Positions 23,731 to 32,841 of a stretch of DNA of 64,000 nt are shown piece after piece (the stretch's first letter is position 1; every line of letters starts with the position of its first letter). This DNA is from Macrostomum lignano (Eukaryota). The stretch spans positions 62,001 through 126,000 of the forward strand of contig NIVC01001726.1 in assembly GCA_002269645.1 (NCBI GenBank), read 5' to 3'. The notes beneath the pieces are model-generated. The model saw only the letters and a program-made list of their open reading frames with translations. It had not been told where the DNA came from and made no database searches. A program made the translations under genes and the position numbers.

Positions 23731-26351
23731 AGGAGGACGACTCTCAATAAATTAACGAAGGCTAAAAGCAACGTTGGCATTACAAGTGCAGTTAAAGTTA
23801 GTTAATTGATATCAAATAAACGTTAACTAATGTTGTTGGCGCCAGTAGTATATTTTATCTTAAACATGGCAATAAATTTGATTTAGTAATCAATAAAAAA
23901 TTAGTACATACGGTACTAATGTAAACAAAAAAATAAGTTGTACGTAATAAAGTATAAAAAATGCAAGAAAAAATCAGCGCAAAAAACGAAGTAACGCTTG
24001 CCGAAAGTTTCATAAAAACGCTACTCGCTACTGTTACTAGCTGTATTGTGAAAATTAAAATTAATTTGTGCAAAAAAAGATAAATAACTCAAGTCAAGAA
24101 AATACAGTATAAACAATTTAAATAATCACACTTGCACGCAACTCAGCAGTAAACAGAAAAGCACCTAAAGTACACAAAAGCAACAAAAACTGAGATTTGG
24201 AGTTTGAAAACATTTAGAACGATCGAACCAACGAGCAGACACGCTAATCAAGACACATTGAAGACGGGAGGAGCCTCTGTACAAACATAGAGACAATTTT
24301 AATCAATTTTACTTGTATATTTAAACCAAAAATATCAGAGTAACTAGATGTGTCACTCGCAATTAAAGTTGTGAAAAATTAAAGTGTCTATTCTTTATTC
24401 AGTAGTTTGTCTGCGCACTGTCAGTAGAATTTAATGTGCTAGCTAAAATTTTATTTCCTTCCTCGGGGTTTGTGACCCTAGGGATTAAGGAGAATATGGG
24501 GTTAAGAATGAACAACAAGCATAAACTTGATGTACACAAGTGAACGCAAGACGGGCGAAACTCAGCCTGGGGGGGGCAGGCCCAATCAAGCTCAGCCAAT
24601 GAGAGAGCAGTAAGGAAAGAAATCAAAGTTAGACCGACGAAACCTAGCCTGGGGGGCAGGTCCAATCTAGCTCAGCCAATGAGAGAGCAGTAAGGAGAGA
24701 AATCAAAGTTAGGCCGACGAAACTTAGCCTGGGGGGCAGGTCCAATCTAGCTCAACCAATGAGAGAGAGCAGTAAGGAGAGAGGTCAAAGTAGACGGACG
24801 AAACTCAGCCTGGACGGGGCAAGCCAATCTAGATCAGCCAATGAGAGAGCAGTAAGGAGAGAAAAAAGTTAGACGGACGAAACTCAGCCTGGGGGGGGCA
24901 GGCCCAATCAAGCTCAGCCAATGAGAGAGCAGTAAGGAAAGAAATCAAAGTTAGACCGACGAAACTTAGCCTGGGGGGCAGGTCCAATCTAGCTCAGCCA
25001 ATGAGAGAGCAGTAAGGAGAGAAATCAAAGTTAGGCCGACGAAACTTAGCCTGGGGGGCAGGTCCAATCTAGCTCAACCAATGAGAGAGAGCAGTAAGGA
25101 GAGAGGTCAAAGTAGACGGACGAAACTCAGCCTGGACGGGGCAAGCCAATCTAGATCAGCCAATGAGAGAGCAGTAAGGAGAGAAAAAAGTTAGACGGAC
25201 GAAACTCAGCCTGGGGGGGGCAGGCCCAATCAAGCTCAGCCAATGAGAGAGCAGTAAGGAAAGAAATCAAAGTTAGACCGACGAAACTTAGCCTGGGGGC
25301 AGGTCCAATCTAGCTCAGCCAATGAGAGAGCAGTAAGGAGAGAAATCAAAGTTAGGCCGACGAAACTTAGCCTGGGGGGCAGGTCCAATCTAGCTCAACC
25401 AATGAGAGAGAGCAGTAAGGAGAGAGGTCAAAGTAGACGGACGAAACTCAGCCTGGACGGGGCAAGCCAATCTAGATCAGCCAATGAGAGAGCAGTAAGG
25501 AGAGAAAAAAGTTAGACGGACGAAACTCAGCCTGGGGGGGGGGCAGGCCCAATCAAGATCAGCCAATGAGAGAGCAGTAAGGAAAGAAATCAAAGTTAGA
25601 CCGACGAAACTTAGCCTGGGGGGCAGGTCCAATCTAGCTCAGCCAATGAGAGAGCAGTAAGGAGAGAAATCAAAGTTAGGCCGACGAAACTTAGCCTGGG
25701 GGGCAGGTCCAATCTAGCTCAACCAATGAGAGAGAGCAGTAAGGAGAGAGGTCAAAGTAGACGGACGAAACTCAGCCTGGACGGGGCAAGCCTATCTAGA
25801 TCAGCCAATGAGAGAGCAGTAAGGAGAGAAAAAAGTTAGACGGACGAAACTCAGCCTGGGGGGGGCAGGCCCAATCAAGCTCAGCCAATGAGAGAGCAGT
25901 AAGGAAAGAAATCAAAGTTAGACCGACGAAACTTAGCCTGGGGGCAGGTCCAATCTAGCTCAGCCAATGAGAGAGCAGTAAGGAGAGAAATCAAAGTTAG
26001 GCCGACGAAACTTAGCCTGGGGGGCAGGTCCAATCTAGCTCAACCAATGAGAGAGAGCAGTAAGGAGAGAGGTCAAAGTAGACGGACGAAACTCAGCCTG
26101 GACGGGGCAAGCCAATCTAGATCAGCCAATGAGAGAGCAGTAAGGAGAGAAAAAAGTTAGACGGACGAAACTCAGCCTGGGGGGGGGCAGGCCCAATCAA
26201 GCTCAGCCAATGAGAGAGCAGTAAGGAAAGAAATCAAAGTTAGACCGACGAAACTTAGCCTGGGGGCAGGTCCAATCTAGCTCAGCCAATGAGAGAGCAG
26301 TAAGGAGAGAAATCAAAGTTAGGCCGACGAATCCATTTCAGCCTACTCTGC

Positions 26352-27275
26352 ATGGATAAATCAAAACCACCTGACACGGCTCGGGAGCCGTCAATTCCCG
26401 CGGCCGGGGGTCCGTCAATCCCCCAACCCTCCAACATGGAGGTTGATTCTGCCGCGAATCCCGCGGAAACCCCCACACCTCGCTCAGGTGCGTCCACCTC
26501 TACCCCCGCTACAGGGGCGTCTCAAAATGACGGCTTCCAGGTCGTCAACCGTCGCAGGCGCGATGATAAAACCTCGGCTGGCTCTGAGCGGAAAAGGCAG
26601 CAGCCAGACGAGCGTACCGACCCCTCGCTGGACCCCAAGAGGCCAAAGGAGGCCAATGCTGGCACGTACGCCAAAGTGGCGACGGAGCCGAAATTTAAAA
26701 TCTGCGTGCGCGCGGCTAGCGGTACGCTGACCACCGCCCAGATGGAAGCATCAATCGGCATGATTGATGACTTCCTCTGGGAAAACGACGCCCTCGACAT
26801 CAAAGTCGAGGCGATTCGAAACGCCAACGGCAGCGTCATCCTCGCCTTCAAGGACGAAGCCCAGCTCGAGCTCGCGCTGGCTAACCTGGTGTCCATCTCC
26901 TGGGACACCTGCACGACCGCCCTCCCGCCTTTGGTCGTTGAGCGTGCCCGACCACCGCCGCCCTGCAGGCGCTACCGAGCCTTCTACTCCGGCTCGAGAA
27001 GCATCGAGGAGATCCGCGCCCGGCTCCTCAGTAAAAACCCCGACCTACCTCAGGACGGTATCCGGGCCTTCAAGGAGGTTCCGGCAAAAGGCGCTCCCGG
27101 CAAGACCCTGTACATGGGTTTCTCCGCGGAGTGGGAAGACGCCCTCAAGAAGGACGATTTTGCCGCCTACATCGGAGCGTGGAAGATCGTCTTCCACCTG
27201 CTGCTCAGGCGTCGTCCAGCCGGCGATCGGCGCCGAGGTGAGTCCGTGAGCTCGGATAGCTCTGGGAACGAGTAA
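26352..27275 (+). CDS. LINE ORF1 (307 aa; LOA-type, DUF4780-like C-terminal region, no CCHC knuckles)
   Basis: Low-complexity basic N-terminus, TYAKVA motif, then a globular region ending ...LLSKNPDL...LYMGFS..W..ALKK..F..YIG...IVF, similar to LOA-clade ORF1s (recalled, not searched). Confidence 0.8.
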
Positions 27276-31093: not shown

Positions 31094-32841
31094 TCCTTGT
31101 GCTCTTTTACCTTGGGGTTGCGATAGGGGCCTCGCGGCCTATTCGCGGCGCCTGCGCCCCCCGTCAGTAGTAAGTAAGTAAGTAAGTAGGCCGACGAAAC
31201 TTAGCCTGGGGGGCAGGTCCAATCTAGCTCAACCAATGAGAGAGAGCAGTAAGGAGAGAGGTCAAAGTAGACGGACGAAACTCAGCCTGGACGGGGCAAG
31301 CCTATCTAGATCAGCCAATGAGAGAGCAGTAAGGAGAGAAAAAAGTTAGACGGACGAAACTCAGCCTGGGGGGGGGCAGGCCCAATCAAGCTCAGCCAAT
31401 GAGAGAGCAGTAAGGAAAGAAATCAAAGTTAGACCGACGAAACTTAGCCTGGGGGGCAGGTCCAATCTAGCTCAGCCAATGAGAGAGCAGTAAGGAGAGA
31501 AATCAAAGTTAGGCCGACGAAACTTAGCCTGGGGGGCAGGTCCAATCTAGCTCAACCAATGAGAGAGAGCAGTAAGGAGAGAGGTCAAAGTAGACGGACG
31601 AAACTCAGCCTGGACGGGGCAAGCCAATCTAGATCAGCCAATGAGAGAGCAGTAAGGAGAGAAAAAAGTTAGACGGACGAAACTCAGCCTGGGGGGGGCA
31701 GGCCCAATCAAGCTCAGCCAATGAGAGAGCAGTAAGGAAAGAAATCAAAGTTAGACCGACGAAACTTAGCCTGGGGGGCAGGTCCAATCTAGCTCAGCCA
31801 ATGAGAGAGCAGTAAGGAGAGAAATCAAAGTTAGGCCGACGAAACTTAGCCTGGGGGGCAGGTCCAATCTAGCTCAACCAATGAGAGAGAGCAGTAAGGA
31901 GAGAGGTCAAAGTAGACGGACGAAACTCAGCCTGGACGGGGCAAGCCAATCTAGATCAGCCAATGAGAGAGCAGTAAGGAGAGAAAAAAGTTAGACGGAC
32001 GAAACTCAGCCTGGGGGGGCAGGCCCAATCAAGCTCAGCCAATGAGAGAGCAGTAAGGAAAGAAATCAAAGTTAGACCGACGAAACTTAGCCTGGGGGGC
32101 AGGTCCAATCTAGCTCAGCCAATGAGAGAGCAGTAAGGAGAGAAATCAAAGTTAGGCCGACGAAACTTAGCCTGGGGGGCAGGTCCAATCTAGCTCAGCC
32201 AATGAGAGAGCAGTAAGGAGAGATCATGGTCAAAGTTAGACAACTGTTAATCGGCCTTGCTGGGGGCACACGCACTGGATTTACTCGTAAGTGCAAATTC
32301 AAGTAGAGTGCAGATGCTAACATTGCTATTTTAGTGGGTCTGCTAGTAAAATTCCAGAAGCGATTGCTACTGAAAAAATAGTAGGTGAGCGCATCTTTGC
32401 GAGTGACATACCCAGTTAATATACTAGCGAAAACTACGAAGATAGCTTTTCTTTCAACACAAAATAGCAATGGCGTTTTTATAGGACAGAGAAGAAAATG
32501 CTGAACTGTTCATACATTTTCAAGCTTTGCAAGTATTAATATATGAATTAAAAAAACTACATTTATTTGGGGCTTGTGCGCACGGAAATTGATCGGGGAG
32601 TTGTCGTGCGATTCATACCCATGAGGGCCAACCCCCAAGGCACAGAGAGTGTACATCGCGAATATTTACATTTTTAATCCACCACTGTCCTCTTTCTAGC
32701 TCCTAGTCATCTCTTTTAGTTACAGAAAAGAGACACATACCGTTGTATTAAGCAGGGATCGTTGAGTTTGGAATCTTGGAAGCACATGTAAAGTACGCGG
32801 TGTCATGAATCAAGCAGCTGAGTGGCTGTTTGTGGCTCACC

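Follow-up and report, generated by a model that had tools for sequence, protein, structure and literature searches.

The DNA analysed here, a stretch of 64,000 nucleotides (64 kb) from the flatworm Macrostomum lignano (contig NIVC01001726.1, positions 62,001 to 126,000; hereafter the window), contains a full copy of a retrotransposon from the class lacking long terminal repeats (LTRs), known as non-LTR, 4,855 bp in length, at positions 26332-31186 on the forward (+) strand. The element is read as a young, autonomous long interspersed nuclear element (LINE) of the I group, which has an R1/TRAS-like endonuclease, encodes a DUF4780-type protein in its first open reading frame (ORF1), prefers TTAGG target sites and produces the protein of its second open reading frame (ORF2) by translational reinitiation; the probability of this reading in its entirety is put at roughly 0.55. 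Its core, that the element is an intact, active and young autonomous LINE of M. lignano, is close to certain.

The usual hallmarks of a LINE are present: there are no LTRs, the 3′ end carries a tail, the copy is flanked by a 12-bp target-site duplication (TSD), and the window holds a second, 5′-truncated copy with a TSD of its own. The parts of the full insertion outside the coding region are as follows (window coordinates, here and below).

26332..31186, + strand: full LINE copy, bounded by the TSD and breaking the satellite array 24549-32223.
26320..26331, + strand: 5′ TSD copy, TAGGCCGACGAA, within the 80-bp satellite; identical to 31187-31198, with the empty site rebuilt from 322-bp paralogues.
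31187..31198, + strand: 3′ TSD copy, TAGGCCGACGAA; identical to 26320-26331.
26332..26351, + strand: 5′ untranslated region (UTR) of 20 nt, beginning TCCATTTCAG; read from the sequence.
31094..31162, + strand: GC-rich 3′ UTR, 96% identical in the second copy.
31163..31186, + strand: tail, CAGTAG(TAAG)4; read from the sequence.

The tandem array that is interrupted by the element repeats every 80 bp, with a higher-order unit of 322 bp that is 99% regular. On the two sides of the insertion (24549-26331 and 31187-32223), four 80-bp subunit variants make up each 322-bp higher-order repeat, with 99% identity between higher-order copies. TTAGG is present in only one of the four variants, and thus once per 322-bp unit, and this is the variant that the LINE occupies. 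The empty site could be rebuilt from the paralogous 322-bp units, which read AAAGTTAGGCCGACGAAACTTAGCC without interruption (in a wider reading, ...AAATCAAAGTTAGGCCGACGAAACTTAGCC...). The two copies of the TSD are identical at 12 of 12 positions. The duplication is nevertheless 10-12 bp long, because the end of the tail (...GTAAG) and the start of the target (TAGG) leave up to two bases ambiguous, and the nick of this copy is compatible with T|TAGG, TT|AGG or TTA|GG. The candidate transcript start is TCCATTTC, and the frame of ORF1 is open back to 26301. The 3′ UTR reads CCTTGGGGTTGCGATAGGGGCCTCGCGGCC...CGTCAGTAG and is followed by (TAAG)n. The predicted fold of the 3′ UTR is no better than that of shuffled sequences (z -0.8), and a search against Rfam gave no match anywhere in the window.

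Both reading frames are open throughout. Their domains are listed below.

26352..27275, + strand: ORF1, 307 residues, no internal stops; a disordered basic N-terminus followed by a DUF4780-like domain.
26643-27227, + strand: DUF4780-like domain, ORF1 residues 98-292; profile-profile alignment.
27275..31093, + strand: ORF2, 1272 residues, no internal stops; Pfam, alignment to the TRAS1 endonuclease, conserved catalytic columns.
27383-28039, + strand: apurinic/apyrimidinic endonuclease (APE) domain, ORF2 residues ~37-255; alignment to the TRAS1 endonuclease.
28853-29611, + strand: reverse transcriptase (RT), ORF2 residues 527-779; Pfam RVT_1.
30191-30577, + strand: ribonuclease H (RNase H), ORF2 residues 973-1101; Pfam RNase_H.
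30854-30907, + strand: C-terminal CX2CX8HX4C (CCHC) motif, ORF2 residues 1194-1211; family alignment.

The three Pfam matches of ORF2 are all above threshold: Exo_endo_phos_2 (residues 135-251, E 5.6e-22), RVT_1 (E 5.8e-29) and RNase_H (E 5.5e-13). In an alignment of 13 sequences of the family, the invariant columns include E77, D171, N173, D221, D247 and H248 of the endonuclease, D612 of RT motif A and D702-D703 of the YADD box, the RNase H glutamate, and C1194, C1197, H1206 and C1211 of the CCHC motif. The D-E-D-H-D residues of RNase H are likewise present. As all catalytic and CCHC residues are kept, nothing in ORF2 is disabled.

As a single sequence, the endonuclease has as its best matches among solved structures TRAS1 (1WDU, E 5.6e-17) and then R1Bm (2EI9, E 5.7e-9). 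A profile of the family endonuclease gives 148 bits to TRAS1, 103 bits to R1Bm and 52 bits to the L1 endonuclease, in a contrast set of solved structures among which no LOA or I endonuclease exists. The match is not a generic one, because two controls gave less: a spider element that carries RNase H (P0060) matches the TRAS1 and R1 endonucleases more weakly, and a relative without RNase H (P0071) does not match them at all. The clades of the I group in which RNase H has been listed are I, Loa, R1, Nimb, Ingi, Tad1, Loner and Outcast, and target-specific APE LINEs are found mostly in the R1 and Tx1 clades (PMC4640811). The first-pass annotation of this stretch, described below, ascribed RNase H to TRAS elements; the listing names the R1 clade as a whole. 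Judged by its domains and alignments, the element is an APE-type LINE with an R1/TRAS-like endonuclease and is assigned to the RNase H-bearing I group.

The family has very close sister copies. In protein searches the top matches were gene models of M. lignano in UniRef, dozens in number, which contain pieces of the element at 95-100% identity, often fused to host domains. One of these (P0001) shows 6 differences from ORF2 across 804 aligned residues and none across another 315, a second (P0002) is 99.6% identical, and protein identity to other M. lignano copies ranges from 99.3 to 100%. Given the perfect TSD of the full copy and these near-identical sisters, the family was active very recently. 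A first-pass annotation of this stretch, made from the letters alone, had proposed an intact and recently active LINE with RNase H at 26320-31198 in a non-insect host, with an ORF1-ORF2 overlap of TAATG and a (TAAG)n tail. The sequence features that it listed were all found where it had placed them, the tail being (TAAG)4 in the full copy and (TAAG)3 in the second; the host is a flatworm, and intactness and recent activity both stood. Its label 'R1/LOA-like' is a reasonable one, since the endonuclease matches TRAS1 and R1Bm far better than L1 and RNase H has been reported for the I group.

Outside this family, the element belongs to a lineage that is large, widespread and poorly labelled, and among its sequences the M. 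lignano element is otherwise an ordinary member. An exhaustive HMMER search with ORF2 returned 6,017 proteins at E below 1e-30, and more than 100 clusters (at 50% identity) align to ORF2 over its full length at 32-41% identity; for many members, identity is 30-41% over about 93-95% of the length. Higher values come from three partial proteins, at 53%, at 57% and, for L009, at 48.6% over the full length once its locus had been retrieved. The HMMER search gave 150 close relatives, none with an element name; word-index protein searches returned only M. lignano gene models together with unlabelled metagenome and insect proteins, and one seeded with Drosophila relatives gave D. palustris and D. subpalustris models alone. 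Nearly all of the matches come from metagenomes or bulk read assemblies and carry cluster labels that say only 'ribonuclease HI'; the named hosts are Drosophila palustris, Drosophila subpalustris and the bug Nesidiocoris tenuis. M. lignano itself has a second, distant family of this lineage (P0114, UniRef A0A1I8FVG9), with about 38-43% identity in ORF2 and a recognisable ORF1 homologue. The closest metagenomic cluster (that of P0113) includes a protein deposited at NCBI under a metagenome-assembled genome (MAG) of a 'Kangiellaceae bacterium' (MEE4247892.1); it is almost certainly a fragment of a eukaryotic LINE that was mis-binned into a bacterial MAG.

ORF1 is more diverged. A direct Pfam scan gave no match and the DUF4780 threshold was not reached. 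In profile-profile comparison (hhalign), ORF1 aligns to the DUF4780-type ORF1 proteins of relatives with a probability of 91% (E 1e-6, 185 columns), and a BLASTP comparison with ORF1 of L009 gives 28% identity over 233 residues (E 5e-25). Wherever the ORF1 of a relative could be recovered together with its Pfam record, it carries DUF4780. A single-sequence AlphaFold model shows only alternating strand and helix elements and, with a mean predicted local distance difference test (pLDDT) score of 46.6, was too poor for a structure search. From these alignments, ORF1 is assigned as a diverged DUF4780-type protein behind a disordered basic N-terminus. CCHC zinc knuckles, sought in the sequence and with the Pfam zinc-knuckle models, were not found in ORF1. 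Proteins encoded by ORF1 in the R1 clade carry C-terminal CCHC zinc knuckles, and those of SART1 also have zinc knuckles.

The second copy of the family adds an independent case to the question of target preference. The window holds two copies of the LINE, and all statements on site preference rest on n=2.

8520..9162, - strand: second, older copy of the same family, found by blastn and tblastn; 96% identical, with a (TAAG)3 tail.
9163..9175, - strand: 5′ TSD copy of the second insertion, TTAGGATCCCGGG; adjoins the truncated 5′ end with zero offset and matches 8507-8519 at 11 of 13 positions.
8507..8519, - strand: 3′ TSD copy of the second insertion, TTGGGATCTCGGG; adjoins the last base of the tail and differs at the A/G of TTAGG and at one C/T.

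This copy is 5′-truncated at element position 4092 and has an internal deletion of 114 bp. In the orientation of the element, its 5′ flank reads ...GAATTCT TTAGGATCCCGGG, followed by element sequence TAACCACTG..., and its 3′ end reads ...GTAAGTAAGTAAG, followed by TTGGGATCTCGGG ATTAC.... The 13-bp duplication thus touches both ends of the element with zero offset, and it starts at TTAGG in the same orientation as in the first insertion. The targets are a single TTAGG in the satellite for the first copy and a single TTAGG in unique DNA for the second, and both are non-telomeric. Counted over both strands, the window has 102 TTAGG motifs, or about 8e-4 per oriented position; given the motif at the first copy, the chance of a second, independent junction in the same register is about 0.001-0.005. 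On two of two insertions, a real preference for TTAGG-like sites is probable. It would be a preference for the short motif wherever it occurs, and not for telomeric arrays, much as L1 prefers TT|AAAA.

The two junctions also narrow the position of the nick. A nick at T|TAGG gives a TSD of exactly 12 bp in both insertions; TT|AGG requires an untemplated T in the second copy. With T|TAGG, the tails end in ...TAAG (first copy) and ...TAAGT (second copy), both in phase with a (GUAA)n RNA end. Since a 12-bp TSD then fits both copies, T|TAGG appears to be the most economical nick, and is favoured over TT|AGG, the site of SART1. The first-pass annotation had the satellite split at TT|AGG with a duplication of 11-12 bp, and had inferred a TTAGG preference from this one insertion. 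The perfect duplication stands, at 10-12 bp, and TT|AGG gives way to T|TAGG as the simpler choice; the preference gains from the truncated copy (8520-9162, - strand), which adjoins TTAGG in the same orientation, and is tempered by the sample of two and by the one TSD copy that reads TTGGG.

At least five copies of a near-palindromic ATCCCGGGAT(T) flank the second copy of the LINE within window positions 8440-9200 and complicate the TSD call; the motif may be what remains of another repeat, or of the ends of miniature inverted-repeat transposable elements (MITEs). Further copies of the family were sought by exact-protein look-ups of ORF1 and ORF2 and by searching the JGI metagenome contigs with the 3′ UTR, and none was obtained. 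No TSDs were found in the contigs of relatives.

The mechanism that would account for these junctions is target-primed reverse transcription. The ORF2 endonuclease would nick the bottom strand opposite T|TAGG; the freed ...CCTA-3′ end would pair imperfectly, at three of four bases, with the UAAG repeats at the 3′ end of the RNA and prime synthesis of the cDNA; RNase H would remove the RNA template, and a cut of the top strand 12 bp downstream would produce the 12-bp TSD. That the endonuclease, and not annealing of the tail, sets the TTAGG preference is given somewhat less than even odds. According to the strongest competing explanation, the endonuclease has no specificity, nick sites are loosely defined, and the (UAAG)n tail simply anneals to nicked ends with TA(A/G)G-like complementarity. 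Such annealing, which the first-pass annotation had named as an alternative, is plausible because three of the four bases of the nicked ...CCTA-3′ end, the two terminal ones among them, can pair with UAAG. In relatives, the last, imperfect unit of the tail runs into the flank, as in L006 ((CAA)7-CAG|CC) and L002 ((TAAGTCA)3-TAGTCA), and each family has its own tail, which is what co-variation of tail and site would produce. In both targets, however, a G stands at the position of the tail's A (TAGG, not TAAG), both carry a T across the nick, a position that annealing cannot read, and the endonuclease of ORF2 resembles the sequence-specific endonucleases of the R1 clade. With two insertions the discrimination is weak, at about 1 in 16, and control by annealing is judged somewhat unlikely.

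Tails of relatives are made of simple repeats as well. They are (TAA)8 in L001, (AAT)5 in L005, (CAA)7 in L006, (TAAGTCA)3 in L002 and (ATG)n in L009 and L010; L004 has a run of A at the end of its contig. Four of these tails, in which the last unit is often imperfect and merges into the flank, are given in contig coordinates.

L002, 4920-4960: tail.
L006, 5240-5265: tail.
L009, 5160-5180: tail.
L010, 4235-4289: tail.

Simple-repeat tails are a trait of the lineage, with a repeat unit that is specific to each family. The repeats suggest that reiterative, telomerase-like tail synthesis and priming by microhomology may be general in the lineage. In the I factor of Drosophila, short tandem repeats of the (TAA)n type take the place of a poly(A) end, and L001 and L005 resemble it in their (TAA)n-type ends.

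Two features mark the junction between the two reading frames.

27273..27277, + strand: TAATG, in which the last A of the ORF1 stop TAA (27273-27275) is also the first base of the ORF2 ATG (27275-27277); ORF2 lies in the -1 frame.
27263..27286, + strand: perfect 8-bp hairpin, UGGGAACG / CGUUCCCA (arms 27263-27270 and 27279-27286), with an 8-nt loop, AGUAAUGC, that holds the stop-start overlap.

The overlap agrees with both the sequence and the frames. In the frame of ORF2, a stop lies 18 nt upstream, at 27257, and after this ATG no other follows in frame until codon 118, which falls within the endonuclease domain, so UAAUG is the only usable start of ORF2. A hairpin of this kind at the overlap was reached in 0.17% of shuffles (P about 0.002), and stems of at least 7 bp enclose just 0.9% of the positions of the element. 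ORF2 would most likely be translated by termination-reinitiation at the UAAUG in the loop of the hairpin, a proposal to which even odds are given.

The competing view treats the overlap as incidental and ascribes synthesis of ORF2 to -1 frameshifting, internal ribosome entry or leaky scanning. ORF2 does lie in the -1 frame relative to ORF1, and in most relatives the two frames are separated by 11-134 nt or overlap by 26-29 nt. In nine relatives, the ORF1-ORF2 spacing is -29, -26, -1, about +11 to +18 (three cases), +36, +61 and +134 nt. Frameshifting was rejected as a candidate: with the stop so near, the frame of ORF2 is open for just 15 nt upstream, and this interval contains no slippery heptamer of the form X_XXY_YYZ. 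Leaky scanning over 920 nt is unlikely because ORF1 holds many AUGs. An incidental overlap fits poorly with the finding that, over a range of spacings of about 160 nt, 2 of 10 families share an overlap of exactly 1 nt. These alternatives together are regarded as unlikely. The UAAUG overlap is not ancestral to the lineage, yet its recurrence is higher than one would expect from how widely the spacings vary.

A number of observations weigh against the combined reading given at the outset. With a 5′ UTR of just 20 nt, the full copy may lack the true 5′ end and promoter of the family. UAAUG is missing in eight of the nine relatives with a readable junction and is present only in L004, where the hairpin was not seen at the UAAUG of this distant relative; in the M. 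lignano element, the wider region downstream of UAAUG folds no better than shuffles (z -1.2). Relatives show tails other than (TAAG)n, and their flanks are without TTAGG. Tail and target share the microhomology TA-G, and annealing alone could bias the choice of site. The TTAGG preference is drawn from two insertions only; the TSD copies of the second differ at A/G (TTAGG versus TTGGG), which leaves its ancestral target uncertain, and its flanks are rich in the CCCGGGAT motif, which inflates chance similarity.

The last of these points bear on the possibility that the element has no sequence preference at all, and that TTAGG at two junctions reflects chance together with a mis-assigned TSD of the old copy. 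The sample is small, the second TSD has two mismatches and lies in locally repetitive sequence, one of its copies reads TTGGG, and the motif was noticed post hoc. Against coincidence stand the low chance of an in-register repeat of the first motif (about 0.001-0.005, as above) and the fit of the second TSD, which adjoins both ends of the element with zero offset and has the same 12-bp length at the same nick position. Coincidence is considered improbable.

Telomeric insertion is possible in principle, because the telomeres of M. lignano hybridise to (TTAGGG)n (PMC5068713), which contains TTAGG. In its strongest form, the proposal would be that the endonuclease specifically nicks T|TAGG, so that the family can enter (TTAGGG)n telomeres, with telomerase-like synthesis of the (TAAG)n tail and hairpin-assisted reinitiation at UAAUG; this full combination appears doubtful, and its probability is low. 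If true, the element would be the first telomere-repeat-competent APE LINE outside arthropods, and a TRAS/SART-like specificity would be of independent or much older origin. Very improbable is a true telomere-repeat-specific element of the SART/TRAS kind that lives in (TTAGGG)n and whose two window copies are both off target: the SART1-like orientation, with the 3′ end 5′ of (T)AGG (PMC7265360), the TRAS1 endonuclease as best structural match, the SART1-like UAAUG overlap and the hybridisation of the telomeres (PMC5068713) speak for it, but both insertions are at a single TTAGG, in satellite and in unique DNA, where SART1Bm needs at least three repeats, a search for TTAGG(G) arrays found none within the 64-kb window, the element ends in (TAAG)n in place of poly(A), the type of ORF1 differs, the family fragments in dozens of M. 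lignano gene models imply dispersed genic and intergenic copies, and fluorescence in situ hybridisation (FISH) showed no interstitial telomeric blocks (PMC5068713). In its behaviour the element is closer to a LINE that prefers a short target motif than to a specialist of telomeres.

The genome of M. lignano, a flatworm used as a transgenic model, is very rich in repeats, and its LTR elements have already been catalogued; no description of its LINEs was found in the searchable literature. New mutations, and differences that arise between laboratory lines, could be traced to an apparently active LINE if its target motif is short and defined, and such an element would be a candidate for studying how APE endonucleases gain sequence specificity. 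Should there be a real TTAGG preference that the endonuclease determines, the element could be a visitor to TTAGGG telomeres outside insects. The UAAUG in a hairpin loop offers a compact, testable candidate case of eukaryotic termination-reinitiation.

The rest of the window is an unusually dense mosaic of unrelated tandem repeats. About 30 minisatellite arrays are distributed over positions 1-64000, with units of 12-89 bp, lengths of 0.2-1.8 kb and unique spacers of roughly 0.4-1 kb, and they lie between and around host exons. Three recur at a distance: a 20-bp array at 40305-41575 is found again in inverted orientation at 54001-55272 (about 90% identity), a 40-bp array at 1135-1455 is inverted at 19082-19396 (80%), and a 28/29-bp array at 42012-42295 is repeated in direct orientation at 60662-60938 (91%). 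Two stretches of host coding sequence and one further ORF, all on the - strand, are listed.

32842-33681, - strand: ORF with an immunoglobulin domain.
38534-39403, - strand: wolframin-like exon, WC-rich E 4.4e-19 and WCOB E 3.6e-9.
55500-57674, - strand: GC-rich ORF of 724 residues (about 0.6 GC), with no Pfam match.

With host coding sequence nearby, the LINE and its satellite are in a gene-containing region and not in a pure heterochromatic block.

Among the closest known systems is SART1Bm of Bombyx mori, a LINE of the R1 clade that is specific for telomeric repeats. It and the flatworm LINE are both APE-type elements with two ORFs, and SART1 couples them by termination-reinitiation at UAAUG with RNA structure nearby (PMC3894237), as proposed here. 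In both, the 3′ end is joined just 5′ of (T)AGG in the same orientation; in SART1Bm, it is a poly(A) tail that is joined to the AGG of TTAGG, and at least three TTAGG repeats are required (PMC7265360). Unlike SART1Bm, with its poly(A) and telomeric arrays, the flatworm LINE has a (TAAG)n tail and single, non-telomeric TTAGG sites, and it carries RNase H and a knuckle-less DUF4780-type ORF1. The 'SART-like hallmarks' of the first-pass annotation reduce to analogies on these grounds and on the occurrence of UAAUG in only one of nine relatives; the resemblance to SART, a weak one, looks like analogy and not membership. The likeness to TRAS1 (1WDU) and R1Bm (2EI9), the best structural matches, is confined to the endonuclease domain that was compared, and TRAS1 inserts in the opposite orientation (PMC7265360). 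A UAAUG that serves in termination-reinitiation also joins two ORFs in RNA viruses, for example in the hypovirus CHV1-EP713 (PMC2699510), there in a viral genome.

The architecture of ORF2 is that of the Drosophila I factor, with APE, RT, RNase H and a C-terminal Cys-His motif in the same order (PMC2881922), and RNase H is shared with the I, Loa and R1 clades (PMC4640811). Unlike the I factor, whose ORF1 has three CCHC motifs (PMC2881922), the flatworm element has none in ORF1, and its tail unit is TAAG. Similarity over the full length of ORF2 is found with the LINE lineage with DUF4780-type ORF1 from D. palustris, D. subpalustris, N. tenuis and metagenomes, in which ORF2 is 30-57% similar and keeps its order of domains, profile comparison shows ORF1 to be homologous, and tails are simple repeats. 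Within that lineage, the M. lignano family is distinguished by an ORF1 below the Pfam threshold for DUF4780, by its TAAG tail unit and TTAGG sites, and by a UAAUG overlap that it shares only with L004.

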